Sequence record: LT598654.1
Direction: 5' to 3' (one strand)
DNA: 64,000 nt
Both the position numbers and the translations under genes were made by a program. The stretch's first letter is position 1; each line of letters starts with the position of its first letter. Shown here in pieces: positions 10,151 to 33,171 of the stretch. Below the pieces are notes generated by a model. It was not told the DNA's origin. It worked only from the letters and a program-made list of their open reading frames with translations, and searched no databases.

Positions 10151-10151
10151 T

Positions 10152-16161: not shown

Positions 16162-17802
16162 TTAGGCCTCCGTTGCTCTCGAACCTGTTGGGTTAATATT
16201 AAACACAACATGGATTCGTTTAGCTGCGATAACCGGGTCAAACACCATATCAAGAACAAGGTCACCGTTAGCGATTGTGTCGTTGGTATTGTTTCTATCG
16301 TCACACACGTTTTGGTATTCGTAAACACCGCGTCCGCGCCGGATAGGTTCAAGGATACTGTCAGCAGTTGCCTTAACACGATCACGTAAAACAGAATCGT
16401 TTGGATTAAACACGCTAGACAGAGTGCTTGCCTTAGCACGTTTAAGTACGTAGTTAACCAATCGTACAACGTTAACATACTGGAAGCTGGTTGCGGTAGT
16501 CTGGGTAGTTTGTTGACCCCAGATAACATAACTACCATCACGCATTTTGCGGATAGGGTTAATCTGCGCCATGTCCAAGCTATCACGAGCACCTTGATCG
16601 TATTGAACACGTACACCAAGAACGTCCAGCGTACCTAAATCGATACCAGCAGGAGCAAACCAAAGGGCGCGAGTAGAGTCAGCTTTAGCAAAAGCGGCTG
16701 CAACGTAACCACTGGGTGGTACATAGACTTCAAGGTCATTTTCATAATCGTACACCTTAATGTCGGCGCTGTACAAGGCAGAGTAGTAACTACTGAGGTT
16801 CAGAATGTTACGCTTGTAGTTAACTGCATCAGCTACTTCCTGCATATCACTTGGCATATCAAGGATTGCAATAGCATCACCGCGACCTTCCGCAATAGAG
16901 TTCAATGCGTGGTGTATAGTGTAATGAGTATAACCACCGTTAACCAGAATATCCACTTCGATTTCTTCTGGGTCTGAATACAGATCCCAGGCATCGATGA
17001 TTTGATTTTCCGTAGGAGGTAAGCCGTCATCACCGCCGTCCAAAATACAGCTAGCAGTATTAACGATTGGAATCTCAGGACAGAACTCGTTGTTACGAAC
17101 ACGTACAATGTTTGATTTTTTATTGATAACGTCTTCGATGAAAAGCTGTGTACCTTCTTCGTCTGTCTCTTGGTGTCTGGTAACCAAGAAGCTTTCGTCA
17201 GGTTGAACCTGAGCACCAGCTTTAGACAGGTAAACATCTACGTAGAACTTGAGAGGGTCATGACCGTTACCACGTAAAGCAACACCAGGAGGATTAGACG
17301 GACGGATTTCGATAACGATACCGTTGTTCCAGTCACCAGGGTTAGCAGCACAGAAGTAACCGAGAATGTTTCCAACACCAGGAGTTGTAGGAGTAAAGCC
17401 CAGTGAATTCAGTGGGTCGTTAGCACCTTCTGGATTGTTGGTAGTAGGGTTCTTCCAAACACTCAAAGCAAGTTGAGGGTCTTGTGCATTGGTATCATCC
17501 GTAGTGAAGTAAGAACCCGCAGTAAGGGCTCCGTTAACCACACGGGTTACGTAACAACGGCTTGATTGATTTAAGAAAGGTTCGACAGAGTAAGCCATAT
17601 AACCATATTCAGTTCCACCGAACCCGAACGTGGCTTTATAGTTAGCAAAATCTGTGATAAGGGTCCGTTCACCAACAGGCCCTTTAGGTGTAGCACCGAC
17701 GAATGCAGCAACAGAGGTCGCTACGTTAGCAGGACGCTCACTGAGGTCTTTTACGTAACCGTAGACGCCTGGTGCTGGATTGGATGGATTTATAGTTGAC
17801 AT
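16162..17802 (-). CDS. Contractile tail sheath protein
   Basis: PGVY N-terminus, AFVGATPKGP, VPPSGYVAA, WFAPAG, QINPI, IWGQQT and VNVVRL are canonical sheath motifs. Confidence 0.93.
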   Translation of the reverse strand: MSTINPSNPAPGVYGYVKDLSERPANVATSVAAFVGATPKGPVGERTLITDFANYKATFGFGGTEYGYMAYSVEPFLNQSSRCYVTRVVNGALTAGSYFTTDDTNAQDPQLALSVWKNPTTNNPEGANDPLNSLGFTPTTPGVGNILGYFCAANPGDWNNGIVIEIRPSNPPGVALRGNGHDPLKFYVDVYLSKAGAQVQPDESFLVTRHQETDEEGTQLFIEDVINKKSNIVRVRNNEFCPEIPIVNTASCILDGGDDGLPPTENQIIDAWDLYSDPEEIEVDILVNGGYTHYTIHHALNSIAEGRGDAIAILDMPSDMQEVADAVNYKRNILNLSSYYSALYSADIKVYDYENDLEVYVPPSGYVAAAFAKADSTRALWFAPAGIDLGTLDVLGVRVQYDQGARDSLDMAQINPIRKMRDGSYVIWGQQTTQTTATSFQYVNVVRLVNYVLKRAKASTLSSVFNPNDSVLRDRVKATADSILEPIRRGRGVYEYQNVCDDRNNTNDTIANGDLVLDMVFDPVIAAKRIHVVFNINPTGSRATEA

Positions 17803-17807
17803 TAATA

Positions 17808-17887
17808 AACTCCCTAAAAGGAATATGGCATTAAGTATAAGAACGTAAATATGCTCTTATAATAAAATTATAAACTTTAAGGGAGTT
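17808..17887 (-). promoter_or_regulatory. Structured 5' leader of the sheath gene: an anti-SD arm pairs with the Shine-Dalgarno
   Basis: On the minus strand, AACTCCCTTAAAG (17887-17875) is complementary to CTTTTAGGGAGTT (17820-17808) at 12/13. Inner 9-bp hairpin at 17836-17861. TATAAT at 17872-17867. Confidence 0.6.
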
Positions 17888-17895
17888 ATCAATCT

Positions 17896-18687
17896 TTATG
17901 GGAAGAGGAGGCTCTGGACTGAGGCTATCTGAATTAGCTCTTTTTCTGCTTTTTCTGGGTAAGCAACACACTTGGATTTTAAAGCTTCTATACTAAAGTC
18001 TAAAAGCTCGTTAGTTAATTGAACCTTGAAGTTGGCTAAAATAGATTTAATGGCATCGGTAACACGTTTGTCTACCAGCACACTATCAACGAAGTGCAAG
18101 GCTACAGACTTCCTAACACAACTCAAACATTCACCGCACTCTCCAAGAGTATCAGCATCAACATGATAACAACTACGGCTATACTTACCTACAGACTCTA
18201 GCAATGATACAAATGCGTCCATTCCAAATCGGTCACAGTAACCTAACAGGTAACCTGCTTTGGTGGATGAAACGTAAGGTCGCTGTATATTAAACTTAGA
18301 TGCACCATGTTTGGTCTGAGAAGAATCCTCACCAAACAAGTCAAGTACCGCAGTCGCTTTATTAAAGAAATCGTCGGTACTGTCCTGAGCAATATCTGCC
18401 TGTGTACTTCCAATGTAAATGCTGTCACCATAGGTAGCAGCAGCCAACAACAAGAACATGTTACGGAAAGGTAGAATCTTATTGGTTAGTTCAAACTGTG
18501 CTAAGTTTAGGTCAACGACTTCCACGTAAGGTTGGATAAAAGGATCGCTAGATATTAGATTTAACTCTGTGCGATTCTCGTGCGTACCAATGTCAAAAGC
18601 TAGAAGCTTAATATCAGTCTGCGAGTTTAACAAGGTACGTGCAAGCACAAAGCTATCCAGTCCGCCTGAGTAAAGCATTGTTTTCAT
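17896..18687 (-). CDS. queC: 7-cyano-7-deazaguanine (preQ0) synthase
   Basis: SGGLDS PP-loop, PFRN motif, SRSCY...CGECLSC zinc site. Confidence 0.88.
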   Translation of the reverse strand: MKTMLYSGGLDSFVLARTLLNSQTDIKLLAFDIGTHENRTELNLISSDPFIQPYVEVVDLNLAQFELTNKILPFRNMFLLLAAATYGDSIYIGSTQADIAQDSTDDFFNKATAVLDLFGEDSSQTKHGASKFNIQRPYVSSTKAGYLLGYCDRFGMDAFVSLLESVGKYSRSCYHVDADTLGECGECLSCVRKSVALHFVDSVLVDKRVTDAIKSILANFKVQLTNELLDFSIEALKSKCVAYPEKAEKELIQIASVQSLLFP

Positions 18688-18689
18688 AT

Positions 18690-19478
18690 CTATTCCTCGA
18701 ATGAAAAATCGAACTCTTGGTACTTACCTTTTAAAGTATCAAGAATGTTTTGCTTCTCCTTGATCTTCTTAAGGTAGAACTCAATGGATGTTTTAATAAT
18801 AGAAGCATGAGAGTCCTTAGCAACTTCCATTCCATGAGTCTCATATATCTTTACAACAAAGTGAAATTCATCCTCAGCGAAAGCTTTAATGATACCAGTC
18901 AATGTTTCTATTTCAAACTTTAGGGCATCGATCTGTTCGTCTAAAGATAATAATACCTGTACTTCGGATACCGACTCCAAAGCTTTTTCTACATCCTTGA
19001 TGTGCTTAGCGCGTTTCTTTTTATCGTTAAGCAAGTTCAGGATTTCTACAAGAGCCTGATGGTCATACGCCTTGTACGCACCGTGAGCCTGGTGATAAAA
19101 CGTAACAAGCTTAGAGTTGCCTACCTTGTCTGGGTGGCATATATTGCTAATCTTCTTAAAGAGTTTCTTACAGGCAGTCTTAACCTTCTCGCTTACTTCA
19201 CGAATTTCGGGTTCGTACTCAGGTTCAGGCTGTTTAGGTTCGGGTTTAGGTTGCTTGCTGCGCTTCTCATACTCTATGTCGGTACACAGGTCTTGGTAAT
19301 ACGCTTTTAGCTGTTCACACCTTTCTATAAGAGCAGTATTGGATTCAAGCATTACCTTCAACAATGAATCTTTTAACTCGGTGTAGTTCAGGATAGTTTC
19401 GTTAAGACTATCCCGCTCTGCCTCAAAGCGCATCAAGTCAAAGTGTGTGTAGTTGAACCCATGTAATACTGGTAACAT
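18690..19478 (-). CDS. J-domain (DnaJ-like) co-chaperone with coiled coils
   Basis: KKLFKKISNICHPDKVG: helix II plus HPD motif. Confidence 0.75.
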   Translation of the reverse strand: MLPVLHGFNYTHFDLMRFEAERDSLNETILNYTELKDSLLKVMLESNTALIERCEQLKAYYQDLCTDIEYEKRSKQPKPEPKQPEPEYEPEIREVSEKVKTACKKLFKKISNICHPDKVGNSKLVTFYHQAHGAYKAYDHQALVEILNLLNDKKKRAKHIKDVEKALESVSEVQVLLSLDEQIDALKFEIETLTGIIKAFAEDEFHFVVKIYETHGMEVAKDSHASIIKTSIEFYLKKIKEKQNILDTLKGKYQEFDFSFEE

Positions 19479-19496
19479 AATTCACCTTATACAAGA

Positions 19497-19516
19497 CTAG
19501 GGGCAAACGCCCCTAG
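19497..19516 (-). terminator. Perfect 8-bp GC-rich hairpin (terminator or processing site)
   Basis: CTAGGGGC-GTTT-GCCCCTAG on the minus strand, weak U-tract. Confidence 0.55.
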
Positions 19517-19519
19517 AAT

Positions 19520-19735
19520 TTAACAAGTTTCTTTTACAAGCTGACCGATTTCGCAATCGAGTAACTTTTGAATGTCTGCGGGAACTGTATTTCGGGCAGA
19601 CAGGTGTTTTCTTAACCAATGAAGGTTAGCACCATGTTTGTCCACGTACCGTCTGTTCTTAGGTAGATCGATAGATTCACCTTGTAAGAACGCATTCAAT
19701 TTTTCGAGTTTCGTCGCTGCTACTGCTGTAGTCAT
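19520..19735 (-). CDS. Hypothetical protein (71 aa)
   Basis: AAGGA RBS, co-oriented. Confidence 0.7.
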   Translation of the reverse strand: MTTAVAATKLEKLNAFLQGESIDLPKNRRYVDKHGANLHWLRKHLSARNTVPADIQKLLDCEIGQLVKETC

Positions 19736-19746
19736 TATTGTTCCTT

Positions 19747-20667
19747 CTAGCTTGCTGATGAAACACGTAACTCCAGGCGTGTTGGGGATACCGCTACTGG
19801 AAATACGCGAGTAAAAGATTTCCGCTCTTTAATACGCGAAACATTATTAATACCAGTCATTTGCATACTTCCAGTATACACATCACTCGGTACGTGTTTT
19901 TGATTAGAGATACCTAACCAGTCGTTGAAGATGGTGAACGCTGTCTTTTCATCATCTTCGTAGTCGATGCCTATAATCTCTGCACCGCGATATGTCACGT
20001 TACCTTTACCTATAACTTCGATAGCAGGTACATTGAATCGTTCTTTAATGAACGGAGGCATTGCGATAGTAAGTACCACGCCTTCAACAATTTTGCTGTT
20101 TCGCAGTTTTGATAACAGAGAGAAGTATTCAACGACACCTTCATTAGGAGTAGAACCTGACTTACCAAAGTGTTCGTAAAGGTACTCTGCTTGTTGCAGG
20201 ATGTTTTCACCAATCACAGTACCGATAGCTTCGTACTCTGGAGTACCCGCACGTTTCTCCAACTGACTTGCCACTTCTTTGACCCAACGAGTTTCGCGTG
20301 TACCCATGCGACGATTAATAGCTTCACTAGGTTCAATACAGTCAATACCGTAGTCTTCATACAGGTTACGCGCCAATTCTGCAATGTGCTCAACACTAGG
20401 CTTATCTTCTAAAAGCTCTTTGTTTAGCAGACGTACACATTCAGAATACCAAGCCGATTCGTATTCACCTACAGAGAACACAGTCATAGTAGGCATTGGT
20501 GTACGCATGTTTTTCACGAACTTGAAGTAGTACGGAGTAAATCGAGGGATTGAATTTCTCAACACCATCTGCTTACCATCAATAGCTACGTCACGCACGT
20601 AATGAAGTTTTGAAATACCTGTTTTATCACGATACCAGGTATTAAGTTCGAAAGTGTTAGTTTCCAT
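19747..20667 (-). CDS. Hypothetical protein (start corrected to METNTF)
   Basis: The ATG at 20667 overlaps the folE stop by 11 nt. No recognisable motif. Confidence 0.7.
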   Translation of the reverse strand: METNTFELNTWYRDKTGISKLHYVRDVAIDGKQMVLRNSIPRFTPYYFKFVKNMRTPMPTMTVFSVGEYESAWYSECVRLLNKELLEDKPSVEHIAELARNLYEDYGIDCIEPSEAINRRMGTRETRWVKEVASQLEKRAGTPEYEAIGTVIGENILQQAEYLYEHFGKSGSTPNEGVVEYFSLLSKLRNSKIVEGVVLTIAMPPFIKERFNVPAIEVIGKGNVTYRGAEIIGIDYEDDEKTAFTIFNDWLGISNQKHVPSDVYTGSMQMTGINNVSRIKERKSFTRVFPVAVSPTRLELRVSSAS

Positions 20668-21373
20668 AAGTAAAACCTTGTGCTGAAATTGTGTTGAAGA
20701 ATTCCTGTCGTGCAGATGGGCTATCTTTAAGCGCACCGCGAACAACGGTTGTTACCATTGAACTGTTTTCGTGAGCATGGACACCTCGCATGGTCATACA
20801 CATGTGAGTTGCCTTAACCACGATAGCTAAACCTTTAGGCTTAATCAGTTCTTCAATCTCATTTGCAAGAATCTGAACAGCTTCTTCCTGAATGTGAGGA
20901 CGACCCATAATCCAGCTAGTGATGCGGTTGAACTTACTCAGTCCAATCACTTTCTCACCAGGAATTACACCAATCCAAGCTTTACCGTAGATAGGTACAA
21001 GGTGATGTGAACATGTTGACTTAACATCAACAGGACCTACCGTGTACATTTCATCAAGGTCTTTGGCGTTAGGGAATTCTGTAACGCGAGGTTTAGGTAC
21101 GTAACGACCAGCATACAGTTCACGAAGATACATTTTAGCAACACGCTTTGCTGTTTCATTGGTGTTGTGGTCATTTTCAGTGTCAATAACCATTGTCTCA
21201 AGGACACCTTGCATCTTGCGTTCAAGTTCTAACTGGAGCAAGTCCAGTTCACCAGGTTCAATGAATTCAGAAATATTGTCGTTAGCATGGAACGAACCTT
21301 TGGCATCCTGAATACGCTCACGGATAATAGTGCTGATTGGTGTAACAGAATCCGTAACTTTTTGTTCTGACAT
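20657..21373 (-). CDS. folE: GTP cyclohydrolase I
   Basis: NETAKRVAKMY, STCSHHLVP, GLSKFNR, HMCMTMRG. Confidence 0.95.
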   Translation of the reverse strand: MSEQKVTDSVTPISTIIRERIQDAKGSFHANDNISEFIEPGELDLLQLELERKMQGVLETMVIDTENDHNTNETAKRVAKMYLRELYAGRYVPKPRVTEFPNAKDLDEMYTVGPVDVKSTCSHHLVPIYGKAWIGVIPGEKVIGLSKFNRITSWIMGRPHIQEEAVQILANEIEELIKPKGLAIVVKATHMCMTMRGVHAHENSSMVTTVVRGALKDSPSARQEFFNTISAQGFTYGN

Positions 21374-21381
21374 TATTTTTC

Positions 21382-22014
21382 CTATACGTCTAATGGCGAA
21401 GCATGGATTCGATTACTCGGACCTATGCGAACTACATGTGAAAGTGAAGTAAACATACGCTTACTAAAAAAATTAACAGGGTCATCACCACCTAACACAA
21501 CGATACGAGGTATAGAATCGAAGTGTACCAGTATGTCCCTAAGCATTTCTAATCTAGCAGGACTAGACTCAGTTGTAATGTTTGAAAGAATCAACAAACT
21601 AGGGCGCTGATCTCGAATGTGTTTTATGTAACCGTACTTAGAATCACCGTACATGCGATACCAGTAAGGCATACGATTGTGCGACCGATCACGATTACCA
21701 TCTATACATTCAAAGACGGCAGTCTCCATAATATTTGCAGCAAATACCTTAGCGCGTAAGTCTGTAGGATAACTGTTAACGCAGGCTATAGTGTCTGGAT
21801 ACTTGAAAGGTTCTTCAAGTAACTGGGTAGCGTATTCCAATTGAGCAGCAACACTAATAGGTTTGCTTTTAATGTCATCACCGATTTTAGGCTTAAAGGA
21901 TACAAGACTTGTTTCTAAGTCATACTCAATCTTAGAGCCTTGAAACACGCTACCGTCAGCACCCCTGCTTCGCATCTGAGCAGCAACAGTTTTATCAAAT
22001 TTAAAATGTAACAT
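21382..22014 (-). CDS. Degenerate DnaC/IstB-like AAA+ (helicase-loader-like) protein
   Basis: PSLLILSNI (Walker-B-like strand without DE), RLEMLRDIL and PRIVV pattern. No Walker A. Confidence 0.45.
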   Translation of the reverse strand: MLHFKFDKTVAAQMRSRGADGSVFQGSKIEYDLETSLVSFKPKIGDDIKSKPISVAAQLEYATQLLEEPFKYPDTIACVNSYPTDLRAKVFAANIMETAVFECIDGNRDRSHNRMPYWYRMYGDSKYGYIKHIRDQRPSLLILSNITTESSPARLEMLRDILVHFDSIPRIVVLGGDDPVNFFSKRMFTSLSHVVRIGPSNRIHASPLDV

Positions 22015-22042
22015 AGAAACCTTTGTTTTATTTTATGATTAC

Positions 22043-22054
22043 TATTTACAGTTT
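22043..22054 (-). promoter_or_regulatory. Candidate promoter box AAACTGTAAATA
   Basis: 28 nt upstream of the ATG at 22014. The motif recurs at six other starts. Confidence 0.5.
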
Positions 22055-22291
22055 AGGGTCTAGCAAGGATTTGTACAGAGACATACCCTTATCCGTAAGT
22101 TCCATAGAACCTGAGTTCTCGTAAACAACAACGAGGTCAAGCTTAACAAAACTCTTAACAGTAGCCTTAGCCACAGACCTGTACACACGATCAGACTTTG
22201 CAGTTCCAGCACAACATATATCACCTAGAAACTTCAAAGCAGATACCTGTTTACGAGTTAACTTAAATCCGTCTACTTCAATTCCTGTCAT
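22046..22291 (-). CDS. Hypothetical small protein, possibly winged-helix
   Basis: TVKSFVKLDLVVV...MELTDKG resembles a wHTH wing. Confidence 0.6.
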   Translation of the reverse strand: MTGIEVDGFKLTRKQVSALKFLGDICCAGTAKSDRVYRSVAKATVKSFVKLDLVVVYENSGSMELTDKGMSLYKSLLDPKL

Positions 22292-23027
22292 TACATACTA
22301 GGTTCTCTCCGAACCCTGCCTCCTTGTACAAGTCCTGTAATTCAAAAATTTTAACAGGATAGTTTCGATTTTCCTTGAATGCCCAGTCTGCTCTACTGCT
22401 ATACAACTCTACGTTATCCCACCAAAGCATAGGGTCTTTACCTGCTTCTTCGGTAAGCTTTTCATCACGACGAGTCCAACCAATACCTCCGTTATACATG
22501 GATAGTGCTTTAGACCACGAGTTGCAGTAGTCTTTACCTCGTGCGTTACCATCTAACCATTCCATATAGTAGATCATAGCACGTAATGACCATTCAGGAT
22601 CAAGAGGCTCACCAGTTCCTAGTTCAGCGAACTTATCACCAACCCACTCTGCTGTGCTGTCAGTGAACTGTGTAAGTCCTGTAGCGTAAGGGCTTTTAGC
22701 ATCTGTACGCCACGTACTTTCTTTGTGAACTTGTGCAGCGAAGGTACTAACAGGAGCATTAAGACCGAAAGTATACTGAGCGTAACGGGTTAGGCTACGC
22801 TTGTATACGAATGCGTTGTCAGGAACACCTGGATAGCGTGTTATCTCCTGCTCAACAACAGGAATAGTTTCTTCTACCACTTCACGCGGAATAGGAGTAG
22901 TTTCGACCTGAGCCTCTACTTCTACTTCAACGGAAGGTGTTTCGGTATCCTGTTCGTCTTCACTGGTCTGTTTGCTACATGCACCTGCAAGTATACCCAT
23001 TAAAAATATAAAGTATACTTTTTGCAT
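22278..23027 (-). CDS. Lytic transglycosylase (SLT family) with an N-terminal lipoprotein signal
   Basis: AQVHKES catalytic Glu, GLTQF, ALSMYNGG. MQKVYFIFLMGILAGAC lipobox. ATG at 23027 just after the holin stop. Confidence 0.85.
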   Translation of the reverse strand: MQKVYFIFLMGILAGACSKQTSEDEQDTETPSVEVEVEAQVETTPIPREVVEETIPVVEQEITRYPGVPDNAFVYKRSLTRYAQYTFGLNAPVSTFAAQVHKESTWRTDAKSPYATGLTQFTDSTAEWVGDKFAELGTGEPLDPEWSLRAMIYYMEWLDGNARGKDYCNSWSKALSMYNGGIGWTRRDEKLTEEAGKDPMLWWDNVELYSSRADWAFKENRNYPVKIFELQDLYKEAGFGENLVCNDRN

Positions 23028-23029
23028 GG

Positions 23030-23362
23030 TTAGATACCTACTGAAATACCGATAATACAAGCGAAGATTATTAACGCACGGCGGATAAACGCGAAAGGAA
23101 TAGAACTTTTAACGTAGTCGTATTCTTTCACCTCGTAGTCGTTGGTCTTGTTGGAAAGTTCCATCATTCGGTGATACATATCACTTGGACGGAAACGTCG
23201 AAATAACAACAAATCAATCCAGTAACCAAGCATTGCTGCAATTGAGATAAGACTTACCTTGTATAGGATAAGCTGAGCCTTTGCTTCGCTCATGTACCAG
23301 ATACCAAGATAAAGCAATACGGTGATTAATGCAAAGATACCGCGTTGAATATTATTAGTCAT
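23030..23362 (-). CDS. Putative holin (Mu/D3112-like prophage holin family)
   Basis: Three hydrophobic segments. YKVSLISIAAMLGYWID...RP...RRALII pattern. Adjacent to the SLT gene. Confidence 0.8.
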   Translation of the reverse strand: MTNNIQRGIFALITVLLYLGIWYMSEAKAQLILYKVSLISIAAMLGYWIDLLLFRRFRPSDMYHRMMELSNKTNDYEVKEYDYVKSSIPFAFIRRALIIFACIIGISVGI

Positions 23363-23375
23363 TTGTTTTTCCTAG

Positions 23376-23621
23376 TTAATAGCTTGCAAAAAATACAAAA
23401 TAAACCAAAGAGGCTAAAATGAAATGAGCACTTAACCCTGCTATAATAGCCTCGTCTTTTTTAAATTTACCTCGAATAACAGTGTACTTGTTCTTGAAAT
23501 AAAGTTTGTCTTTAAAAAACAATTTTAAAACACACTGTCCAATATAGGCATTAATGCTAATGGAATAAAAGAATACTCCGATAATAATAAGTATTGCGTA
23601 GTTTGTTCCAGGTGATAACAT
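23376..23621 (-). CDS. Small two-TM membrane protein
   Basis: Two hydrophobic segments, AGGAG RBS. Confidence 0.65.
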   Translation of the reverse strand: MLSPGTNYAILIIIGVFFYSISINAYIGQCVLKLFFKDKLYFKNKYTVIRGKFKKDEAIIAGLSAHFILASLVYFVFFASY

Positions 23622-23630
23622 TAGAGACTC

Positions 23631-25298
23631 CTACATTCGTCGGCTAAATAGTCCGCCTGAAGGTGCAGATTTCTTCTCTTTCTTCTGTTTCTTCTGTCGA
23701 GCCATTGCTTCAAGTTCACGGATTTCAGATTCAGAGTAACCGTCATAATCGATAGAATATTTACCCGCTTCGTTTGCACTCATACCAACATTCTCTTTAT
23801 ACCACTGCATAGCGTCACCAGAGAATTGATATTTAAGTCCTTGCGAATGACGCCAAGTAGATTTGAAACAACCAATCGATTGTCCAAGTTCAGGGTCAAC
23901 AAACATTCGAATGATAGGACTTTGCTTAGGTACGTCTTCGGAAGCAGGAGTCAGTATACGACTAGATTCCTGTTCCCAGTTAGGTGCATTAGACATAGGC
24001 ATACCATAATAATGAGTGTCCCAACGAGGTACGTTCAAACCTACTTGAAGCAATGAGCGCGTACCACATACAAGTCGGATAGTACCTGCGTTTGCGTCTT
24101 CCAGAATCTTCTCACGAATCTGCTTAGCTTTACCACTGCCACCAACGAACTGTGCTGCAATAGTGCTACCCCAAGCCTTGTTAACAGTATCAACAATGTC
24201 TTTAGAATGGTAGACTGTATATACAGGAAACACAATAGAACGTCCGGCTTTCAAGTCTTTCAGGATTTGATCAACGATAAACTTATTACGCTTTTCGTGA
24301 GTTCCTAAGAAACGCATTGCACCTGTCCACGCACTAGGCCCTTTGTTTTGGAACTGTCGTTTGTTCTTAGGCTTTACGTCTGGGGTTTCATGTACATGGA
24401 TAGTAGGAATCAAGGTATCAATCTTGGCTTCGGCTACCTTAGGACCAACAAGTTCTGTCATCAAGAAGTGCTTGCCGTCTTTACGCTTGATTGTTGCAGT
24501 ACAGCCACCTTTATACTTGGTGCGAACACTACCAACAAGCTGAGAAAATTCGTTAGCATTTGCTTTTTGAATTTCATCAATCCACAAAGTACCGAAGTTT
24601 TGATTCAGCCACTTGCGTTTCTTCTTACCGTTCTTATCACTGATAAGAGACTGGTAGGTCATGATTCCAATTTGATACTGTTCAAAGTCCTCTTTCTTTT
24701 CGAGCCAGCCGTACAAACGTTTACCTGTCTTTTCTTCAAGCTTAGGTAGGTTTGTATGAAGCTTAATCTCTTTCAAGAAGTTGTTGAGGTAATCGCGTTG
24801 GTTAGCAATGATAACGAAGCGATGCCCCATTTTGATACCAATAGCGATAGAAGTTACTGTCTTACCTGTACGCGGAGGTGCTTTGATAATACCGTGTTTG
24901 TGATAAGCCCAGTCTTCTACCAGAGGTATTTGTTTAGGTCTTAGTTGACCAGTAAACTTGACTTTGTAATCAAATTTACTCTTAGTACGCAAGTCAACTA
25001 CTTTGAATTGTGAGAACTCAATACCTAGCTTTTCTTCAACGTTGAGGCGATCGCCAATAGGTAACGCGGCATAAGTAACGCCTCGATAAACATAGGTGCT
25101 CCAAGTTCTAATACAACCTTGATAACCACCTAGTTCACAGCTTGCGCATTCTTCGGTGAAGCGTATCTTTCTAAAGTCGCAACTTTTACATATCGTGTCA
25201 TCATAACGGTGATGATCATAATGCTTTTTCAGATCGTCCTCGTCGATGTACTCAAAAGGGATATACATCTTGGCACGTAAGTAGAGTTTATCGCTCAT
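23631..25298 (-). CDS. Superfamily 2 DNA helicase (UvsW-like)
   Basis: APPRTGKT Walker A, IDEIQ Walker B, TAT motif III, GLNVPRWD, QESSRI. Confidence 0.85.
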   Translation of the reverse strand: MSDKLYLRAKMYIPFEYIDEDDLKKHYDHHRYDDTICKSCDFRKIRFTEECASCELGGYQGCIRTWSTYVYRGVTYAALPIGDRLNVEEKLGIEFSQFKVVDLRTKSKFDYKVKFTGQLRPKQIPLVEDWAYHKHGIIKAPPRTGKTVTSIAIGIKMGHRFVIIANQRDYLNNFLKEIKLHTNLPKLEEKTGKRLYGWLEKKEDFEQYQIGIMTYQSLISDKNGKKKRKWLNQNFGTLWIDEIQKANANEFSQLVGSVRTKYKGGCTATIKRKDGKHFLMTELVGPKVAEAKIDTLIPTIHVHETPDVKPKNKRQFQNKGPSAWTGAMRFLGTHEKRNKFIVDQILKDLKAGRSIVFPVYTVYHSKDIVDTVNKAWGSTIAAQFVGGSGKAKQIREKILEDANAGTIRLVCGTRSLLQVGLNVPRWDTHYYGMPMSNAPNWEQESSRILTPASEDVPKQSPIIRMFVDPELGQSIGCFKSTWRHSQGLKYQFSGDAMQWYKENVGMSANEAGKYSIDYDGYSESEIRELEAMARQKKQKKEKKSAPSGGLFSRRM

Positions 25299-25305
25299 GT
25301 TATTC

Positions 25306-25644
25306 CTAACAAAGGTTTGATAATACGTGTGACCACACTTTGGATTTACGGAAAGGTAAGTACGGTGTAGTCTCTTGGAATAGTTTTACAGTACGCCACT
25401 TGGTGCCTTCATCAGTTTCGTAGTCCAAGCTTAACTCAATAGGCATACAGTCTATATCCAATACAGTTCTGCTTAGGTCTAACTCAAACCCACCTACCAT
25501 ACTGAGATAGTTTCTGTACCACTCACGCCCAGCGTTTTCGCGTAACTGTTGAAGATTGTAGTTGCCTGTTGCACATTGCAAGTCTTCTACGTCAACACCG
25601 TAAACGTGGGCTAAGGATTCGAGTAGTTTATCCACCGAGAGCAT
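25306..25644 (-). CDS. Hypothetical protein
   Basis: Co-oriented, overlaps the upstream gene. Confidence 0.6.
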   Translation of the reverse strand: MLSVDKLLESLAHVYGVDVEDLQCATGNYNLQQLRENAGREWYRNYLSMVGGFELDLSRTVLDIDCMPIELSLDYETDEGTKWRTVKLFQETTPYLPFRKSKVWSHVLSNLC

Positions 25645-25840
25645 TCGCTACGCAGTAAGACAGATATGACACAAAGACACGAGGGTCTGGTGTCTGGTTG
25701 TGCTGTTCGCATTCCAACTTATAACGCATACGAGGTTGGAAGAACTCGAAGTACTTCTTCAAAGGAGGATAAAGTTCTTCTTCCTCTACCTCAGGAGTGT
25801 TATCCAAGTCTGCTGATTGTTTTTCTGGAGGCAATGCCAT
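25628..25840 (-). CDS. Hypothetical protein (70 aa)
   Basis: AGGA RBS, co-oriented. Confidence 0.65.
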   Translation of the reverse strand: MALPPEKQSADLDNTPEVEEEELYPPLKKYFEFFQPRMRYKLECEQHNQTPDPRVFVSYLSYCVANALGG

Positions 25841-25849
25841 AGTGTTTCC

Positions 25850-26389
25850 TTAATTGATATTAACGTGGTCGCGTTTTGATATAATAGTAAATGCGTCCAC
25901 TAAGTGTTTAACAGTAAAGCTGGCTTTGTCAATGTCCTCTATAAGGATGCGAGTGATTTTAATCAGCTCGTCGGTATCATCCAAATAGCGGTGCATCTTA
26001 TCCATTACCGCTTTAATAAAGTTTTTGCGTTCTTCTTTAGTACGCAGAGGTTTTAATTCATGCGCGTACTTTATCAAGAAATAACTTTCAAAGCTTTCGA
26101 TCATCTTAGCCAATGAGGTGTTTGCTTCGGTACAAGAAACAAGTATCTCACTGTATCGGTGTCGATTAGTAGTGTCACGAATAGCAGCCTCTGAAAGGTG
26201 CTGGACAAAGTTAGGGTGACCTACTTTAAGCTTGTGTATCTTACGCATACGGTGAAGCGTTTTCAGTTCATCCTTAAGGTCGTCAAAAGGAAGCTGAAAG
26301 AGGTCAGACGTATCGAAGGTAGACTTTAACCTTTTATACCGGGTATCCGATTTAAGGATTTTGCGAATCTTAGATATTTCTGCTGACAT
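25850..26389 (-). CDS. UvsY-like recombination mediator
   Basis: All-helical. C-terminal IEDIDKASFTVKHLVD resembles the T4 UvsY end. Near the UvsW-like helicase. Confidence 0.5.
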   Translation of the reverse strand: MSAEISKIRKILKSDTRYKRLKSTFDTSDLFQLPFDDLKDELKTLHRMRKIHKLKVGHPNFVQHLSEAAIRDTTNRHRYSEILVSCTEANTSLAKMIESFESYFLIKYAHELKPLRTKEERKNFIKAVMDKMHRYLDDTDELIKITRILIEDIDKASFTVKHLVDAFTIISKRDHVNIN

Positions 26390-26820
26390 TAAATTACCAT
26401 ATACTTGTTTATGTTAGGACTTTCAGGAATTAACAGGAAGCTGTCTTCCCTATCAGTATAAACAAAAACACCAGAGAACGATTCGTGATTAATAGAAACC
26501 ATTTCGGTTAAGTCACTATCAATCACAGTAACGCGGTCTTGTGCGATGCGCGTCTTCTTAGCGTTGGTGTCGAAGAAACTTCCAACGGGTCTACCCTCAG
26601 ATGATTTAATGGTATACTGAATACACTCAGTAGAGTGGACCATTGCAGTGTCAGTGACCAACTGCAAATCATCATAACCGATAGGCTTATCGTAGAACAG
26701 GACGAAATGAATTCGTCCCTTAGGACCTTTACCTAACTCGATAAAGGTATTTAGTTCTACAGGCAGTAAAGAAGATGCGATACTGAAAGGTTTTTCCAAG
26801 TCAGTAACGGGACTGGTCAT
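26389..26820 (-). CDS. Hypothetical protein
   Basis: Stop/start overlaps on both sides (TAATG type). Confidence 0.7.
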   Translation of the reverse strand: MTSPVTDLEKPFSIASSLLPVELNTFIELGKGPKGRIHFVLFYDKPIGYDDLQLVTDTAMVHSTECIQYTIKSSEGRPVGSFFDTNAKKTRIAQDRVTVIDSDLTEMVSINHESFSGVFVYTDREDSFLLIPESPNINKYMVI

Positions 26821-28142
26821 TACTGAACCAGTGCGCAGAACTGAGTCAGTTTAATATCACTATCGGCATCCGAGTGATCTGACGTTAAGATAAACACGTT
26901 AGACTTTGCAGCACCTCGAACAGCGTAGGTCTTGGCGTTGAAGCTACCTAGCTTGATGTTGGTAAGCAGGTCGTTGAAAATCTTTGGATATAACTGAATC
27001 GTTTGTTCAGCAACCGCCGCAGACTTGGTTTTCTTTTTACCTTTCTCTGCTTTCTGCTCAACATAGCTGAATGTGTTTGCAACACTTCCGTTGTCGTTAG
27101 AGAAAGAAAGGTTAACACCTTTACTTGCGAACTTGGCACGAAGTACACCACTTGCTTTTTCAGTAACCAGAACCAAGAGGTTGTTGATTGTATCAGTACA
27201 GTCACGTACATTGATCTGGTATTCACCGGAGGGTTTCTTCTTGTTCACCATATCCATCAACGCATAGAATTCATCGATAGATGATTGTTCAGTTTCTTGA
27301 ACAGGTGGAAGTGAAACAACGACGTTCTTACTTAGTACGCGGAAACCTGCTTCGCTGATAAAGAAAGATGCCGATTGCTCTGCTTCGTCACCTAATACCT
27401 TGTTGATTACGTTAAACACTTCATTGGTCAACGACATACGGAAAGGCTTTTCTTTGCCTGCTTCGAATTGACATTCAAACAAGCTCGATGCCCAACGTGT
27501 TTTGGTAATAGCTTTCAACACACCGTCTTGGTAGTCGATGTAGATTTGGCTAGCCTGTCTGTCATCCAGGTGATCGATAAGACGGGTACGCTGTACACCT
27601 TCGCGTAAACGGCTAAGGAGTTCGCTTCCGATTCCGTTAGAACGTTTAAGCCCTTTGCCGAAAATATCATTAACAGCTGGAATCTGATCGACAGTAACAG
27701 GAGTTGTTTTAATAACCCCGTTGAATCTGCCATCTTTCATAGAAAGTTCAGTACCGTCGTACTTGAATTGAATGTTACCGCGACCCTTGATAATGCCTTT
27801 AAGAACTTCGGGTTCAAAGTTAAACGCACCTGAGTCGGCTACTTCAATACCAGTATCGATAGCGATATTTGTATCAGAGGAGTAACCAATGATGAACAGG
27901 TTACCGCTATAACTAACAAGCATGTGTCTACGCATTACGCTGCTGTTAGAAACAAAGCCAGTTACTGCAATAAGTTTGTCCACCGCTTCAACCATTATCT
28001 TGGCATCCATGTTGAACTCAAACTTATTCTTCGATTTCTCCGACAACTGAATCTGAAAAGAAACTGCGCTATCTGATTTGGTAGTCTTCTTAGCGCGTGT
28101 CTTGCTCTTGGTAGGAGTTTTTGTTTTAGCTGCTTTCGCCAT
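26820..28142 (-). CDS. DNA polymerase III beta-like sliding clamp with a basic N-terminal extension
   Basis: About 400-aa three-domain beta/alpha pattern (NLFIIGYSSD, IQFKYDGTELSM, VNLSFSNDNG). Next to the polymerase. Confidence 0.6.
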   Translation of the reverse strand: MAKAAKTKTPTKSKTRAKKTTKSDSAVSFQIQLSEKSKNKFEFNMDAKIMVEAVDKLIAVTGFVSNSSVMRRHMLVSYSGNLFIIGYSSDTNIAIDTGIEVADSGAFNFEPEVLKGIIKGRGNIQFKYDGTELSMKDGRFNGVIKTTPVTVDQIPAVNDIFGKGLKRSNGIGSELLSRLREGVQRTRLIDHLDDRQASQIYIDYQDGVLKAITKTRWASSLFECQFEAGKEKPFRMSLTNEVFNVINKVLGDEAEQSASFFISEAGFRVLSKNVVVSLPPVQETEQSSIDEFYALMDMVNKKKPSGEYQINVRDCTDTINNLLVLVTEKASGVLRAKFASKGVNLSFSNDNGSVANTFSYVEQKAEKGKKKTKSAAVAEQTIQLYPKIFNDLLTNIKLGSFNAKTYAVRGAAKSNVFILTSDHSDADSDIKLTQFCALVQ

Positions 28143-28476
28143 CGTCTTTCCGTTCTGTTTGATTTGTTGAATTATTTTTACAGTTTACTACCTTGAACCC
28201 AACAAACTTCGATTGTAAGAATTCTATAGCTAACTGATAGCTCTGAGTCTTTAAAGGTAAGCATCCACCTAGTACACCGACTACGCTAACACCTACCATA
28301 TTGTCCTGCAAAGGAATACACAGTGCAGGAGATTCAATAAGAGTCTCCGAACACACGTATATTGGGCTGACCAAACTACTCATAGTGTCGTAGTCAGCTT
28401 GCACCATTTCATTTAAACGATTAGCAACTGAGGTAAGCAGTTCTAAATCGTGACGTTCACTTAGTTCAGTAATCAT
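28126..28476 (-). CDS. Hypothetical protein
   Basis: Overlapping neighbours, co-oriented. Confidence 0.65.
   Translation of the reverse strand: MITELSERHDLELLTSVANRLNEMVQADYDTMSSLVSPIYVCSETLIESPALCIPLQDNMVGVSVVGVLGGCLPLKTQSYQLAIEFLQSKFVGFKVVNCKNNSTNQTERKDDGESS
28175..28186 (-). promoter_or_regulatory. Candidate promoter box AAACTGTAAAAA
   Basis: 32 nt upstream of the clamp ATG. Confidence 0.35.
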
Positions 28477-29348
28477 GTTCCTAACTCGTTACCGAAAGCG
28501 TATACGTGACAGCGCATACTTAAACTATAAGCGTGTTGCATACACCACTCGGCTACCTGAGGTAAGATAGCTGTTTGCTGTTCTTGAGTAGCACCCATAG
28601 GCATCAAATAAATGTGCTCGTTGTCTGGGTCTAACCATTCGTCAGAACCGCCTACGTCAAGTAGTTCCTGCATTTTAGCAAGGTATAAACCAACTTCGGT
28701 TACATCAGTTTGTGTACCAACGACAAACTTAAATGAACGCTCCATAGAATGGACTTTCATCTGACTAGACAGTGCTTTGAATGACCAAGCTTTACCGCGA
28801 GGTTCACCACTAGCTTTCATTTTAGGACTGTTAGAGAAGTGGATGCGAGTACTACCCATTTCGCTATTTAAAAACTCTACTAGTTCGCGTTTTATAGGTA
28901 AGCTGGCATTTGTCTCAATAGTGATAGTACGCTCGTAAGCGTAACCGCGCTCATGTATAACTTTGAAGATTTCCAACAATGCTTTTTGGTTCATCATTGG
29001 CTCACCGCCAGTAAACACGAAGTCTACTAAGTCAGGTCTAACACCGATAGGTAACAAGCTAACACACTTGTCTACGATTTCAGTCGCAGTCATTTGTTTA
29101 GCAAGATGTTTGTAATCTTTATGCCAACTGTACCGGCTATCACAACCTTTGGTGAAGTCATCATTAGACAATTCTTCAATCGAATCTACGTGTCGGATAG
29201 GAATATCGCCAATGTTACCATCACTGTCAATATTATCAAAACCCTTACATTCGAAGTTACAACCGAACAATCGGATAAAGAAAGAAGGACGACCAGTGTA
29301 TAGTCCTTCTCCTTGGAGTGAATAGAATATCTCTACTACGTTTATCAT
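28473..29348 (-). CDS. queE: 7-carboxy-7-deazaguanine synthase (radical SAM)
   Basis: EIFYSLQGEG, FIRLFGCNFEC...GCDS, FTGGEP, TIETNA, SNSPK, LSMRCH. Confidence 0.92.
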   Translation of the reverse strand: MINVVEIFYSLQGEGLYTGRPSFFIRLFGCNFECKGFDNIDSDGNIGDIPIRHVDSIEELSNDDFTKGCDSRYSWHKDYKHLAKQMTATEIVDKCVSLLPIGVRPDLVDFVFTGGEPMMNQKALLEIFKVIHERGYAYERTITIETNASLPIKRELVEFLNSEMGSTRIHFSNSPKMKASGEPRGKAWSFKALSSQMKVHSMERSFKFVVGTQTDVTEVGLYLAKMQELLDVGGSDEWLDPDNEHIYLMPMGATQEQQTAILPQVAEWCMQHAYSLSMRCHVYAFGNELGT

Positions 29349-32300
29349 TACGCAACCTCTTCTTTGTATTTACGTAGTGCCTTTTTCTTAGCCCTTGCAC
29401 TAGCGATTGCTTTCTTGATACTGGTACGTCGAGTGTTACCGATTTCAGATCCACCTTGCGCTTGCTTCTCTGCTTTCTCACGACGAGCCAACTCTTTTTC
29501 GTTCGCTGGTATTTCTTTGAGGTATTTCTTGATTGCTTTTTTCTCTTTAGGTGTACGAATATCTTCACCCATAGACTCAATCTTAATACCGTTAGACCAC
29601 AGTTGCTTCTTCATCCAATCAGGCATCGTAGCATACTGAGTTTCCATGATTGTGTGGTACGCTTTGTCTATGTCAATGTCATAGCTGAGTTCGTTGACCT
29701 GTGTTTCCAGCGTGGTACGAATGAGTTTCTTCATACCTTCATAGGAGAAGTCCCATCCTTCAACGTGTTTCTCAGTAGCGCCTATTTCAAAGTCAATCTC
29801 AGGTAGACTGGTAAAATCAAAGTCGATACGATTCTGAACCTGCTTAACCACTTCACTAGTCAAACCTCGCTCAATCATATCAAGTGCTAACCAAACGTCT
29901 TCATAACCACACTCAACAGTTACCGAGTCATGCACCGATACCGACAAGTGCATATCAGGATAGTGACCTGTTTTCTCGTAGTGTTCATACATCATGCGAT
30001 TGATATTACGAATACCGATCATCATTAAGTCTGAACCGAAACCCTGAACAGGTGAGTTTACTGATCTACGTTCTTGGCTTGATACAACAAAGCCTGCGTG
30101 AGGATAATCTTTAGGCAGCATCAATGCCCATAGATGCCTACGACGACCCAACGGCGATTCAACAAACAAGTTCTTACGTGCAAACTTCTTAATCTTATCA
30201 AACCATTTCAAACCAACAGGGAAACGAGTTAAGAACTTTTCCTTTAGTTCCACAATCTTTTCAACTGTTTGACCGGAACCCGCTGCAAGACCTTTATCAC
30301 CTTGTTGATAGATAAGACCGAAGATTACAGTCTTAACCGAGTTACGAACTTCCTTAATCTTATCACGCGCTGTAATAGGAATACCGAAGAAGTAACTGGC
30401 ATTCAAACGGTGAACGTCACCTTCGTCTTCAATACGACGAGCGACTAACTTGTCAGGAACAAAACGGAAACGATTACGTAAGTCTGCACCTGTCTGGAAC
30501 AAGTCAGCTACGCCTTTATCTCCTGATATAATAGACCAACCTCTAACTTCGTGTGCCGAGTAATCCACTTTGATTAGTAGTTTACCTTTACGCGAACTGA
30601 ATAGACGTTTAATCTGTTTACCTAAAACACTGCGGCTTGGAATCTGCTGCAAGTTAGGATCAGAGGCAGACGTTCGACCCGTAACAACTTTTTGATAAGA
30701 GTAACGTGGTCGTATGCGTTGGTCATATTTAAAGTCGTCGTTAGATGCCCATAGCTTCAACAGGTTTTTAACGTATGCGTTTCTAAGCTTACACGCTTTT
30801 TGCCAGTCACCAAATAACTGAACCATCTTAACGTCTTTGTATTGCTTCTGGAAGTCTTTATCGATCTTACCAAGAAATTTACCGTTAGAACGTTTCTTCT
30901 TCGTACTGACACCGACCGGCTCCAGTTCCATAACATCAAAGAACAGCATTTGTTTATGTTCTTCGGAGTTAAGAGAAAAGTTATCTTTGATTTCAACTTT
31001 ACCGAACAAGCCTTCGCTAGGTAAGTTGCGGCCTTCACTGATTAACTCATTTACCTTACGCACTTCTTTAGACGTATATATCTGAGCCTCAATCTTGGCA
31101 ATCTCTTGGTTAATAGGACTGTCAGGATGCTCTAGCTTAAACAGGTACTCTACATCAGTGTACGCACCCGTCGATTCCAGACAACTGAAGGTGTGTATTT
31201 GGTCACTGATCTGTTTACCTATCAGTGCTTCATACTTCTTGAACTTTATGTCCTTAGCCCTGCGCAATTGCGAAAAGAAAATGTGCCAGGGAACCACAAC
31301 GTCAAGACTACAATAATCTAGCACAGGTTCGTCAAGGTGTACCTTACTGATAGTTGCTCGGTCTTCTTTACCAAACTCATTGGTGTAGAAGCTACGACAA
31401 CCATACTGCATAGCCAAGTTAGCAAGATTGTAATAACCAAAACTAGTGATGTTATGTATCACTTTCATGTTTTCGTCAAGACCGAATTCACCAGCCTGTA
31501 TATCCCAAACGTCAGCTTTGTAATATCGGATACCGAAGTTACTACGCATTACGTTAAGGTCGAACTGTGCGTTTGCGTATATCTGGTAAACGTTTTTGTT
31601 ATCCTGTTCAAAGTATTTCTTGAACAGCTTCTTAACCAACTTCAACTCCTTAGCAGTAAACGGAGTATCCATATGGTAGATTGGGATAATGTAAGCGGTC
31701 TTACCGTCAGCACATAACTGAACTGTTTGCAGTCGGTTACACACACGATACAGGTTTTCTGTTTCTGTATCCACTGCAACATACTTGCTTTTAGCCATAA
31801 GCTTCAAGCATTTCTTTAGTTTGTCAATCGTGTCTACATAAACTACATCGTAGTTCTTTTTGGTTTCATCAGATACAAAAGGAATCTTATATCTAAGAGT
31901 ACCACCGTCCAAAGTAGAAACGAAATTACGAGCGGTGTATCCTAACAAGTTTGCAGTGTTAGTAAGGTCGCCGTTCTTGTTACTGATCATCCCATTAAAG
32001 CTGAGTGAACTTATGTGGATGAATTTGTGCTTCTTCTTACCTTGCTCAACCTTCGCATTAATAGGTACACCTAACCAATGCTGGTCAAAGCCTTTGTGCT
32101 GCACAATCAAGTCACGGCTTATAGCGTACTGAGGATCTTTACCGAATGTATGAACAATATCAGGCTTGTACTCGATAATAGCCTGGCGCATACGACGAGC
32201 GAATTCCAAACGAGCTTCGTTTTGGTAATCCTCACTCATGCCGTAGGTTTTAAAACAATTAAAGTTCATAACCAAGTAGTCGTATTCCTCAATTGAATAC

Positions 32301-32542
32301 TCAGCTTGGTAGAATTCGTAGGCTAGGTCAGCTACTTTATGAAACACGTTATCAGTATAACCCGATAGTATTTCACCTGTACCTAAATCTTCGGAGGGAA
32401 CGTGGTCTAATACAAACAGTATCTTACCGACAGGTTTCTTTGGTTTATTTCTCAACAGTTTGAGATCGCCTTTGAACTCCACTACTCGGTCGTAATACCG
32501 GTCTTTGAAGTCAAAGTCAAAGTCTATATAGGACTGGCTCAT
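29348..32542 (-). CDS. polA: Family A DNA polymerase with an N-terminal UDG-like domain and 3'-5' exonuclease
   Basis: ExoI DTETE, ExoII NAQFD, ExoIII YCSLD. TGRTSASDPNLQQIP. Motif A DYSAHEVR, motif B RNSVKTVIFGLIY, motif C VHDS. Confidence 0.92.
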   Translation of the reverse strand: MSQSYIDFDFDFKDRYYDRVVEFKGDLKLLRNKPKKPVGKILFVLDHVPSEDLGTGEILSGYTDNVFHKVADLAYEFYQAEYSIEEYDYLVMNFNCFKTYGMSEDYQNEARLEFARRMRQAIIEYKPDIVHTFGKDPQYAISRDLIVQHKGFDQHWLGVPINAKVEQGKKKHKFIHISSLSFNGMISNKNGDLTNTANLLGYTARNFVSTLDGGTLRYKIPFVSDETKKNYDVVYVDTIDKLKKCLKLMAKSKYVAVDTETENLYRVCNRLQTVQLCADGKTAYIIPIYHMDTPFTAKELKLVKKLFKKYFEQDNKNVYQIYANAQFDLNVMRSNFGIRYYKADVWDIQAGEFGLDENMKVIHNITSFGYYNLANLAMQYGCRSFYTNEFGKEDRATISKVHLDEPVLDYCSLDVVVPWHIFFSQLRRAKDIKFKKYEALIGKQISDQIHTFSCLESTGAYTDVEYLFKLEHPDSPINQEIAKIEAQIYTSKEVRKVNELISEGRNLPSEGLFGKVEIKDNFSLNSEEHKQMLFFDVMELEPVGVSTKKKRSNGKFLGKIDKDFQKQYKDVKMVQLFGDWQKACKLRNAYVKNLLKLWASNDDFKYDQRIRPRYSYQKVVTGRTSASDPNLQQIPSRSVLGKQIKRLFSSRKGKLLIKVDYSAHEVRGWSIISGDKGVADLFQTGADLRNRFRFVPDKLVARRIEDEGDVHRLNASYFFGIPITARDKIKEVRNSVKTVIFGLIYQQGDKGLAAGSGQTVEKIVELKEKFLTRFPVGLKWFDKIKKFARKNLFVESPLGRRRHLWALMLPKDYPHAGFVVSSQERRSVNSPVQGFGSDLMMIGIRNINRMMYEHYEKTGHYPDMHLSVSVHDSVTVECGYEDVWLALDMIERGLTSEVVKQVQNRIDFDFTSLPEIDFEIGATEKHVEGWDFSYEGMKKLIRTTLETQVNELSYDIDIDKAYHTIMETQYATMPDWMKKQLWSNGIKIESMGEDIRTPKEKKAIKKYLKEIPANEKELARREKAEKQAQGGSEIGNTRRTSIKKAIASARAKKKALRKYKEEVA

Positions 32543-32578
32543 ATCATAGATAACATACAGTTAATTGAATTCAGTATG

Positions 32579-32590
32579 TGTTTACACTTT
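32579..32590 (-). promoter_or_regulatory. Candidate promoter box AAAGTGTAAACA
   Basis: 36 nt upstream of the polymerase ATG, just after a terminator. Confidence 0.5.
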
Positions 32591-32612
32591 TGGAATCCAT
32601 ACCCCAGAGGCT

Positions 32613-32635
32613 AAAAAAGGGACAATTAAGCCCCT
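32613..32635 (-). terminator. Rho-independent terminator
   Basis: AGGGGC-TTAATT-GTCCCT followed by a T-run. Confidence 0.7.
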
Positions 32636-32664
32636 AATTTAGTACTGCGCGTCGTTAAACATTA

Positions 32665-33171
32665 CTACCGTTTCTTTTTCTTCTTACGGAATTGCTGATT
32701 GAATTGCGTAGAAGGGGTAGCTGACTGTTCTTGCTGAGCCTCACCAGAAGATTCCGCAGTAGCATCCTCAGGTTCTGAATTAGATTCCTCTATTTCGTTT
32801 TCAGACTCAGCATCAGTCTTTGGGTTTTCAGTAGTCTCCGCATCGGGAGCATGTACTGTGTCACGGCGATTGTCGTACACCTCATGCAAGTCACCTGACC
32901 ATTCAGTAATGCGCTCCTGTGTGAGTTCATCACAAGCAAGGTAACCTTTACGTCGAGGGTCAAGATAAATACCTGAAGGGTACTTACTAACGTGACCTAA
33001 TTCAAAAGGCATACCGTTGTTAGGATACGCTGGCTTGAATTTAGGATCAGCTTCAAACGCCTTCTTAGCTTTGATAGTAAGAGCAGACCAGATACCATCA
33101 CATTTACCTGTGTAGTAGCCGAGTGCTTTTAGTATCATTTGTTGGTTCTGAATTAATCGTCTATTAACCAT
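32665..33171 (-). CDS. Peptidoglycan-binding-domain protein with an acidic tail and RKKKKKR end
   Basis: QQMILKALGYYTGKCDGIWSALTIKAKKAF matches the PG_binding_1 pattern. Confidence 0.7.
   Translation of the reverse strand: MVNRRLIQNQQMILKALGYYTGKCDGIWSALTIKAKKAFEADPKFKPAYPNNGMPFELGHVSKYPSGIYLDPRRKGYLACDELTQERITEWSGDLHEVYDNRRDTVHAPDAETTENPKTDAESENEIEESNSEPEDATAESSGEAQQEQSATPSTQFNQQFRKKKKKR

Follow-up and report, generated by a model that had tools for sequence, protein, structure and literature searches.

Gene content and location

The final 64 kb of the record of Phage NCTB (accession no. LT598654.1; 257,877 bp, circular, from surface water), a stretch of 64,000 nucleotides hereafter called the window, contains folE, queE and queC, three genes of the pathway leading to 7-cyano-7-deazaguanine (preQ0). 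Coordinates are those of the window (record position minus 193,877) unless marked as record positions. Megablast of 17896–29348, the segment spanning the three genes, returned a single match at 100%, which was NCTB itself (LT598654.1), and every gene from 16162 to 33171 lies on the minus strand. NCTB, a jumbo myophage of marine origin that has not been cultured, was described from a decaying Trichodesmium bloom (reference 43 in PMC7412058). It has been grouped with PaBG and Lu11, with Achromobacter phage Motura more distant in the same broad jumbo-phage group.

A preliminary description of the window had placed folE, queE and queC scattered over the segment and had recognized no QueD and no DpdA or tRNA-guanine transglycosylase (TGT)-like gene in the window. 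Pfam, PHROG and PDB matches confirmed the three genes and their positions, and whole-record Pfam scans for TGT and PTPS matched only outside the window, in agreement with the second point. The search of the rest of the genome that it had proposed (queD, dpdA, gat-queC and queF) yielded a QueD gene and a TGT-like gene, and neither Gat-QueC nor QueF. All four preQ0-pathway enzymes are therefore encoded by NCTB, FolE, QueE and QueC in the window and QueD elsewhere, with QueC and QueE being divergent. The features concerned are as follows.

17896–18687, minus strand: queC, divergent QueC family, 263 amino acids (aa), SBV38455 (Pfam QueC, PP-loop and zinc cysteines)
20657–21373, minus strand: folE, GTP cyclohydrolase I, 238 aa, SBV38459 (Pfam, PHROG)
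28473–29348, minus strand: queE, 7-carboxy-7-deazaguanine synthase, 291 aa, SBV38478 (radical-SAM, PHROG 2076 and PDB matches)
29348–32542, minus strand: family-A DNA polymerase with 3'-5' exonuclease (Pfam), given for context only and no pathway enzyme
Record 158914–159978, minus strand, about 35 kb before the window: QueD, 354 aa, SBV38375, two-module T-fold (Pfam PTPS; GenBank annotation QueD)
Record 9565–11160, reached across the circular junction about 9.6 kb beyond the end of the window: TGT-superfamily protein, 531 aa, SBV38183, annotated as hypothetical (Pfam TGT)

Biosynthetic enzymes

The product of 20657–21373 is unambiguously a GTP cyclohydrolase I (Pfam GTP_cyclohydroI PF01227, 9e-45; PHROG 2197, 1.7e-47), 39–42% identical to FolE of two relatives, Vibrio phage vB_VcorM_GR7B (GR7B) and Pseudomonas phage vB_PpuM-Peetri (Peetri). 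QueE matched the QueE-like PHROG 2076 across its full length (2.8e-55), and its only solved relatives among PDB sequences were 7-carboxy-7-deazaguanine synthases, the best being 4njg, 6nhl and 5tgs. Examined for the radical-SAM cysteine triad and the QueE-specific N-terminal motif, the protein was assigned to the QueE family on PHROG 2076, the PDB matches and its three cysteines. Outside the NCTB clade, the next QueE matches among those listed came from nt-1/KVP40-type Vibrio phages and Aeromonas phage Ahp1. NCTB QueE carries an acidic insertion of about 30 residues between the second cysteine and the cysteine of the CDS(R)Y motif; in the same alignment, the cysteine spacings of Motura and phiST QueE were much shorter.

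The product of 17896–18687 scored 49.8 bits against Pfam QueC (PF06508; cut-off 22) and was also matched by the PADLOC QueC model (1.4e-7). Its SGGLDS PP-loop, RN motif and four zinc cysteines line up with those of QueC from Campylobacter phage CP220 and from Motura, GR7B and Peetri; the best BLAST E value against these four was 0.005. A word-based protein search found one close homologue cluster, at 95% identity, on a 256.5-kb contig, and a single-sequence phmmer search of PDB gave only noise. The SGGxDS PP-loop, the four zinc cysteines and the Pfam score place the protein in the QueC family, although it missed the strict equivalog cut-off. Sequence alone does not separate a QueC that forms the nitrile from QueC*, the amide-forming enzyme proposed for Campylobacter phages.

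For SBV38375, a Pfam scan of the whole record gave a PTPS score of 36.9 bits (cut-off 22.4). This was the only PTPS match in the record, so that no second PTPS gene, such as a separate DpdL, was found. The two-module form of QueD is conserved in NCTB, GR7B and Peetri, and in NCTB it is surrounded by genes for baseplate and tail proteins. The N-terminal module keeps an FDHK motif and lacks CxxxHGH; the C-terminal module has GCQNIxHGH, with a cysteine and four residues before HGH, and DQK in place of DHK. From their motifs, the two degenerate halves look complementary.

A search of the entire record for additional tailoring enzymes gave no QueF or QueF-L, no Asn_synthase domain or AsnB-like protein, and no ArcS/DUF5591. 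Gat-QueC was likewise missing, the sole QueC-family gene having no amidotransferase domain. Since QueF/QueF-L, ArcS, an AsnB-like protein, a QueC-fused amidotransferase and DpdL are all lacking, the end product would be the deoxynucleoside of preQ0 (dPreQ0) or of 7-amido-7-deazaguanine (ADG; dADG), and one of these is the likely predicted modified base in NCTB DNA.

A TGT-superfamily enzyme outside the window

SBV38183 scored 34.6 bits against Pfam TGT (gathering cut-off 26.3) and had 93 homologue clusters, many of them on contigs of 160–290 kb. Across 45 aligned homologues, the D140-S-G-G motif, Q145, D174 and D299 were invariant, and the zinc motif CxCxxC...H (C351, C353, C356 and H380) was conserved in at least 90% of the sequences. 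D140, D174 and D299 are presumably the three catalytic/substrate-binding aspartates of TGT enzymes. In an alignment with archaeosine TGT, the DSGGFQ and LDIP motifs of SBV38183 fell on that enzyme's own, and the best Foldseek matches of its AlphaFold model (pLDDT 87, pTM 0.88) were archaeal, human and bacterial TGTs. The Pfam score, the conserved catalytic aspartates and CxCxxC...H residues, and the TGT fold together identify the protein as a TGT-superfamily transglycosylase.

Against solved structures, a profile of the SBV38183 family matched the archaeosine TGT 1iq8 (7.6e-11) and the bacterial DNA-guanine transglycosylase 7ui4 (1e-3). SBV38183 alone gave weak matches to the bacterial DpdA models of NCBIfam and PADLOC, and single-sequence phmmer found no match for it in PDB.

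Directly downstream of the TGT-like gene, in NCTB as in GR7B and Peetri, lies a gene for a 203-aa protein (record 11165–11776, plus strand), which also has a homologue in Motura. The protein has a disordered, lysine-rich N-terminus and an invariant CxC...CKH that resembles a SWIM zinc finger, and it belongs to PHROG 18980, of unknown function. Foldseek found no solved relative of its model (pLDDT 81) at E ≤ 0.001, and the matches of its profile in PDB sequences were designed helical proteins, which we took to be artefacts of the lysine-rich tail.

Relationship to known DpdA types

The family profile of SBV38183 found DpdA2 of ACP17 (4.5e-8) and KVP40 (9.2e-5), and hhalign against ACP17 DpdA2 gave a probability of 96% over about 170 columns. 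tblastn at E ≤ 1e-3 did not link SBV38183 to the DpdA2 phages. For DpdA1, the profile had no match in the 9g or CAjan genomes (E ≤ 10), a result of limited sensitivity given that Pfam TGT was also blank there. Membership in DpdA3, considered because of the neighbouring entries in the 2019 table discussed below, was rejected: phiST gp042, which we take to be CGPG_00065 (DpdA3) from the gene order described in PMC10516641, gave a BLASTP E value of 1.1 and an hhalign probability of 2.3%, and a search of the NCTB protein against CP220 and phiST returned no match. DpdA4 (HVTV-1, HVTV1_69, DUF6610) was also rejected, the family profile having no match in the HVTV-1 genome. The full-text literature search yielded no mention of DpdA5 or DpdA6. 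From these comparisons, SBV38183 is best described as a member of a distinct TGT-superfamily clade from jumbo phages, nearest to DpdA2; no name for this clade was found in the literature searched.

Comparison with related phages and known systems

FolE, QueC, QueD and QueE were present in all four genomes compared (NCTB, GR7B, Peetri and Motura). Around the TGT-like gene, NCTB, GR7B and Peetri share the order primase, two or more genes, TGT, small basic protein, sigma-like protein, single-stranded DNA-binding protein and RecA/UvsX. In both GR7B and Peetri, polA is followed by queE, two or three variable genes, folE, a gene of the 179-aa type and then the helicase; NCTB departs from this arrangement in that folE lies downstream of the helicase and a holin and lytic transglycosylase are inserted. 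The scattering of the pathway genes is thus a trait of the lineage and no sign of incompleteness.

In Motura, the homologue of SBV38183 lies inside a queC-asnB-TGT-x-queE-x-folE cluster, and the deazaguanine system of this phage, including the transglycosylase, was noted by Iyer et al. 2021 (PMC7824862). Its enzyme belongs to the same TGT clade as that of NCTB (26.8% identity, 3e-20), and the two phages share the pathway and the jumbo-phage group; however, in Motura the genes form a cluster that also contains an AsnB-like amidotransferase, whereas those of NCTB are dispersed and no Asn_synthase domain is encoded. The DpdA2 systems of Vibrio phages nt-1 and KVP40 and of Acidovorax phage ACP17 (PMC6884629) resemble that of NCTB in belonging to large myophages and in combining FolE, QueD, QueE and QueC with a transglycosylase of about 420–530 aa, the genes being partly dispersed. 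They are nevertheless remote, with scores of 27.5 and 17.5 bits against at least 45 bits (up to 654) within the NCTB clade, and unlike them NCTB lacks QueF, QueF-L and ArcS.

Hutinet et al. 2019 (PMC6884629) listed LT598654 in their Supplementary Data 1 with FolE SBV38459, QueD SBV38375, QueE SBV38478 and QueC SBV38455, left its DpdA and DpdA2 columns blank, and placed the entry beside Campylobacter phages. Campylobacter phage CP220 and Cellulophaga phage phiST (DpdA3, QueC*; PMC10516641) resemble NCTB in their divergent QueC, and NCTB stood next to them in that table, with FolE, QueD, QueE and QueC and no DpdA; they differ from it in that the NCTB enzyme is not a DpdA3. According to the 2023 study (PMC10516641), every virus with the synthesis genes now has a member of a DpdA subgroup.

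Proposed pathway and alternative explanations

We consider it probable that NCTB itself encodes everything required for 7-deazaguanine modification of its DNA, in genes dispersed around the genome. In this system, FolE would convert GTP to dihydroneopterin triphosphate (H2NTP), the two-module QueD would convert H2NTP to 6-carboxytetrahydropterin (CPH4), and QueE would convert CPH4 to 7-carboxy-7-deazaguanine (CDG), from which the divergent QueC is predicted, by its family and motifs, to form ADG and/or preQ0. SBV38183 would then swap guanine in double-stranded phage DNA for ADG or preQ0 after replication, and this exchange may shield the phage DNA from host restriction. The analysis shows the family assignments, catalytic residues, TGT fold, and synteny and co-occurrence in relatives; that the enzyme acts on DNA and not on tRNA, which base it installs and that this protects against restriction are inferred.

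The proposal in the preliminary description that the pathway serves DNA hypermodification is thus supported indirectly, while the non-standard character it attributed to the system does not hold, because QueD and a TGT/DpdA-like gene lie elsewhere in the genome. As both genes are phage-encoded, borrowed host QueD and TGT, or another route of incorporation, need not be invoked. The kind of system is already known, as that description had anticipated for the case in which both genes were found, and the biosynthetic genes of NCTB were already catalogued in 2019; the modest new point is the identification of its DpdA candidate and the placement of this protein in a jumbo-phage clade near DpdA2. 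This closes an apparent gap: a phage catalogued without DpdA encodes a member of the TGT family whose active site is intact. The finding agrees with the present understanding, in which DpdA is the hallmark of such systems and the base is inserted after replication. Cultured relatives exist in GR7B, the vB_PpuM phages and Motura.

Several observations weigh against a complete DNA-modification system. QueC is very divergent, with 32.7 bits against a cut-off of 150.3 for the NCBIfam equivalog TIGR00364. The top five NCBIfam matches of QueE were all QueE models, each under its cut-off, and the radical-SAM cysteine spacing of this protein is unusual (C-x3-C-x34-C; residues 30–69; 29142–29261, minus strand). 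The TGT-like protein is about equally close to archaeal tRNA TGT and to any DpdA, so that its DNA specificity rests on context. In addition, NCTB is uncultured and known from an assembly alone, and the sole sequencing run with nearly all of 26000–31999 (99% of sampled words), from which the assembly was probably built, is a metatranscriptomic RNA-Seq library.

A variant of the proposed system, which we regard as rather doubtful, is that the NCTB-type transglycosylase, with about 90 mostly jumbo-phage clusters, represents a separate, unnamed DpdA subfamily that, with the divergent QueC and two-module QueD, may insert a base that is not simply preQ0, such as dADG formed directly by an enzyme resembling QueC*, or a more elaborate derivative for which one of the orphan neighbours would be responsible.

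The genes could instead raise queuosine or preQ0 for host tRNA, the TGT-like enzyme acting on tRNA and not on phage DNA. Hutinet et al. 2019 (PMC6884629) raised such a role for 48 phages with pathway genes and no recognised DpdA, and among solved structures it is the archaeosine tRNA TGT that the TGT-like family matches best in sequence. However, ARAGORN found no tRNA or tmRNA gene in the entire 258-kb genome, the record lacks QueF, and the enzyme is encoded between primase and RecA in the replication block, its relatives including DpdA2 and, at a weak level, bacterial DpdA. Moreover, the C-terminal part of SBV38183 is helical in the model, and Pfam gave no match there to a PUA-type tRNA-binding domain. 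We therefore regard a tRNA role as improbable.

A third explanation is that a modified dGTP is built in before or during replication by the phage polymerase. The polymerase (DNA_pol_A, 1.7e-52; DNA_pol_A_exo1, 3.4e-15; Pfam) is the upstream neighbour of queE, and direct reading confirmed that its TAA stop and the queE ATG share base 29348 as TAATG, as the preliminary description had reported. The polA-queE order is kept in relatives, and pre-replicative incorporation was once proposed for Campylobacter phages. The same one-base overlap nevertheless also occurs at 26389 and 26820, making three within 3 kb, and with an ATGA overlap at 28473 the overlapping junctions in the operon amount to 7 of 20; in Peetri, polA and queE are parted by two small genes. 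Because TAATG is frequent nearby and the Peetri genes are separated, the overlap reflects tight operon packing and no specific link between polymerase and pathway, and the special coupling first read into it is not upheld. As NCTB has a TGT-family enzyme whose active site is intact and the field now credits all known cases to DpdA enzymes, we judge incorporation by the polymerase to be quite improbable.

It is highly improbable that the set is only partly functional, with FolE serving folate and thymidylate synthesis, the divergent QueC and QueE having other roles or none, and the DNA being unmodified: QueC and QueE do fall far under the NCBIfam equivalog cut-offs and NCTB also encodes a thymidylate synthase and a dihydrofolate reductase, but all five functions co-occur in the four related jumbo phages, hallmark residues are retained in QueC and the TGT-like protein, and a 95% identical QueC is encoded on the related 256.5-kb contig.

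Neighbouring genes and additional observations

The uncharacterised neighbours at 19747–20667, 26389–26820 and 28126–28476, earlier put forward as candidates for the missing functions, showed no tie to the pathway, the functions of which are accounted for elsewhere. Searches of Pfam, NCBIfam, PHROGs and PADLOC found no pathway family in any of them, and BLAST (E ≤ 0.01) found no counterpart in the queE-folE regions of GR7B and Peetri. The genes at 26389–26820 and 28126–28476 matched solely PHROGs of unknown function. Neither 19747–20667 nor 18690–19478 had a relative in any other deposited phage genome, and ESM Atlas yielded nothing usable for the former. The latter (minus strand) encodes a 262-aa orphan between queC and folE, for which Pfam, PHROG and PADLOC gave nothing; visual inspection suggests a mostly helical, charged protein in which the segment CHPDK...AYKAYD resembles the HPD motif of J-domains.

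The gene at 21382–22014 (minus strand, 210 aa) matched PHROG 20094, labelled 'DNA polymerase' (6.9e-53), and no Pfam family. It has homologues in the same block of GR7B, and a similar-sized Peetri gene at the equivalent position is annotated 'DNA polymerase'. A 407-aa Peetri gene at the position of a 440-aa NCTB gene gave a weak match to a polymerase processivity factor; the pair was not detectably similar, and this assignment was rejected.

The insertion between helicase and folE in the replication block, at 22278–23362 (minus strand), combines Holin_2-3 (6.8e-17) with an SLT lytic transglycosylase (5.8e-12), and a separate endolysin is annotated at record 185336–186118. About one-third of the sampled words of 26000–31999 were found in ten runs of DNA type, belonging to four further studies of marine or aquaculture material, which suggests that related phages occur there. 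Two genes about 38 kb apart are annotated as tail sheath protein FI, one at record 170508–172118 and the other at 16162–17802 (minus strand), where it adjoins queC.

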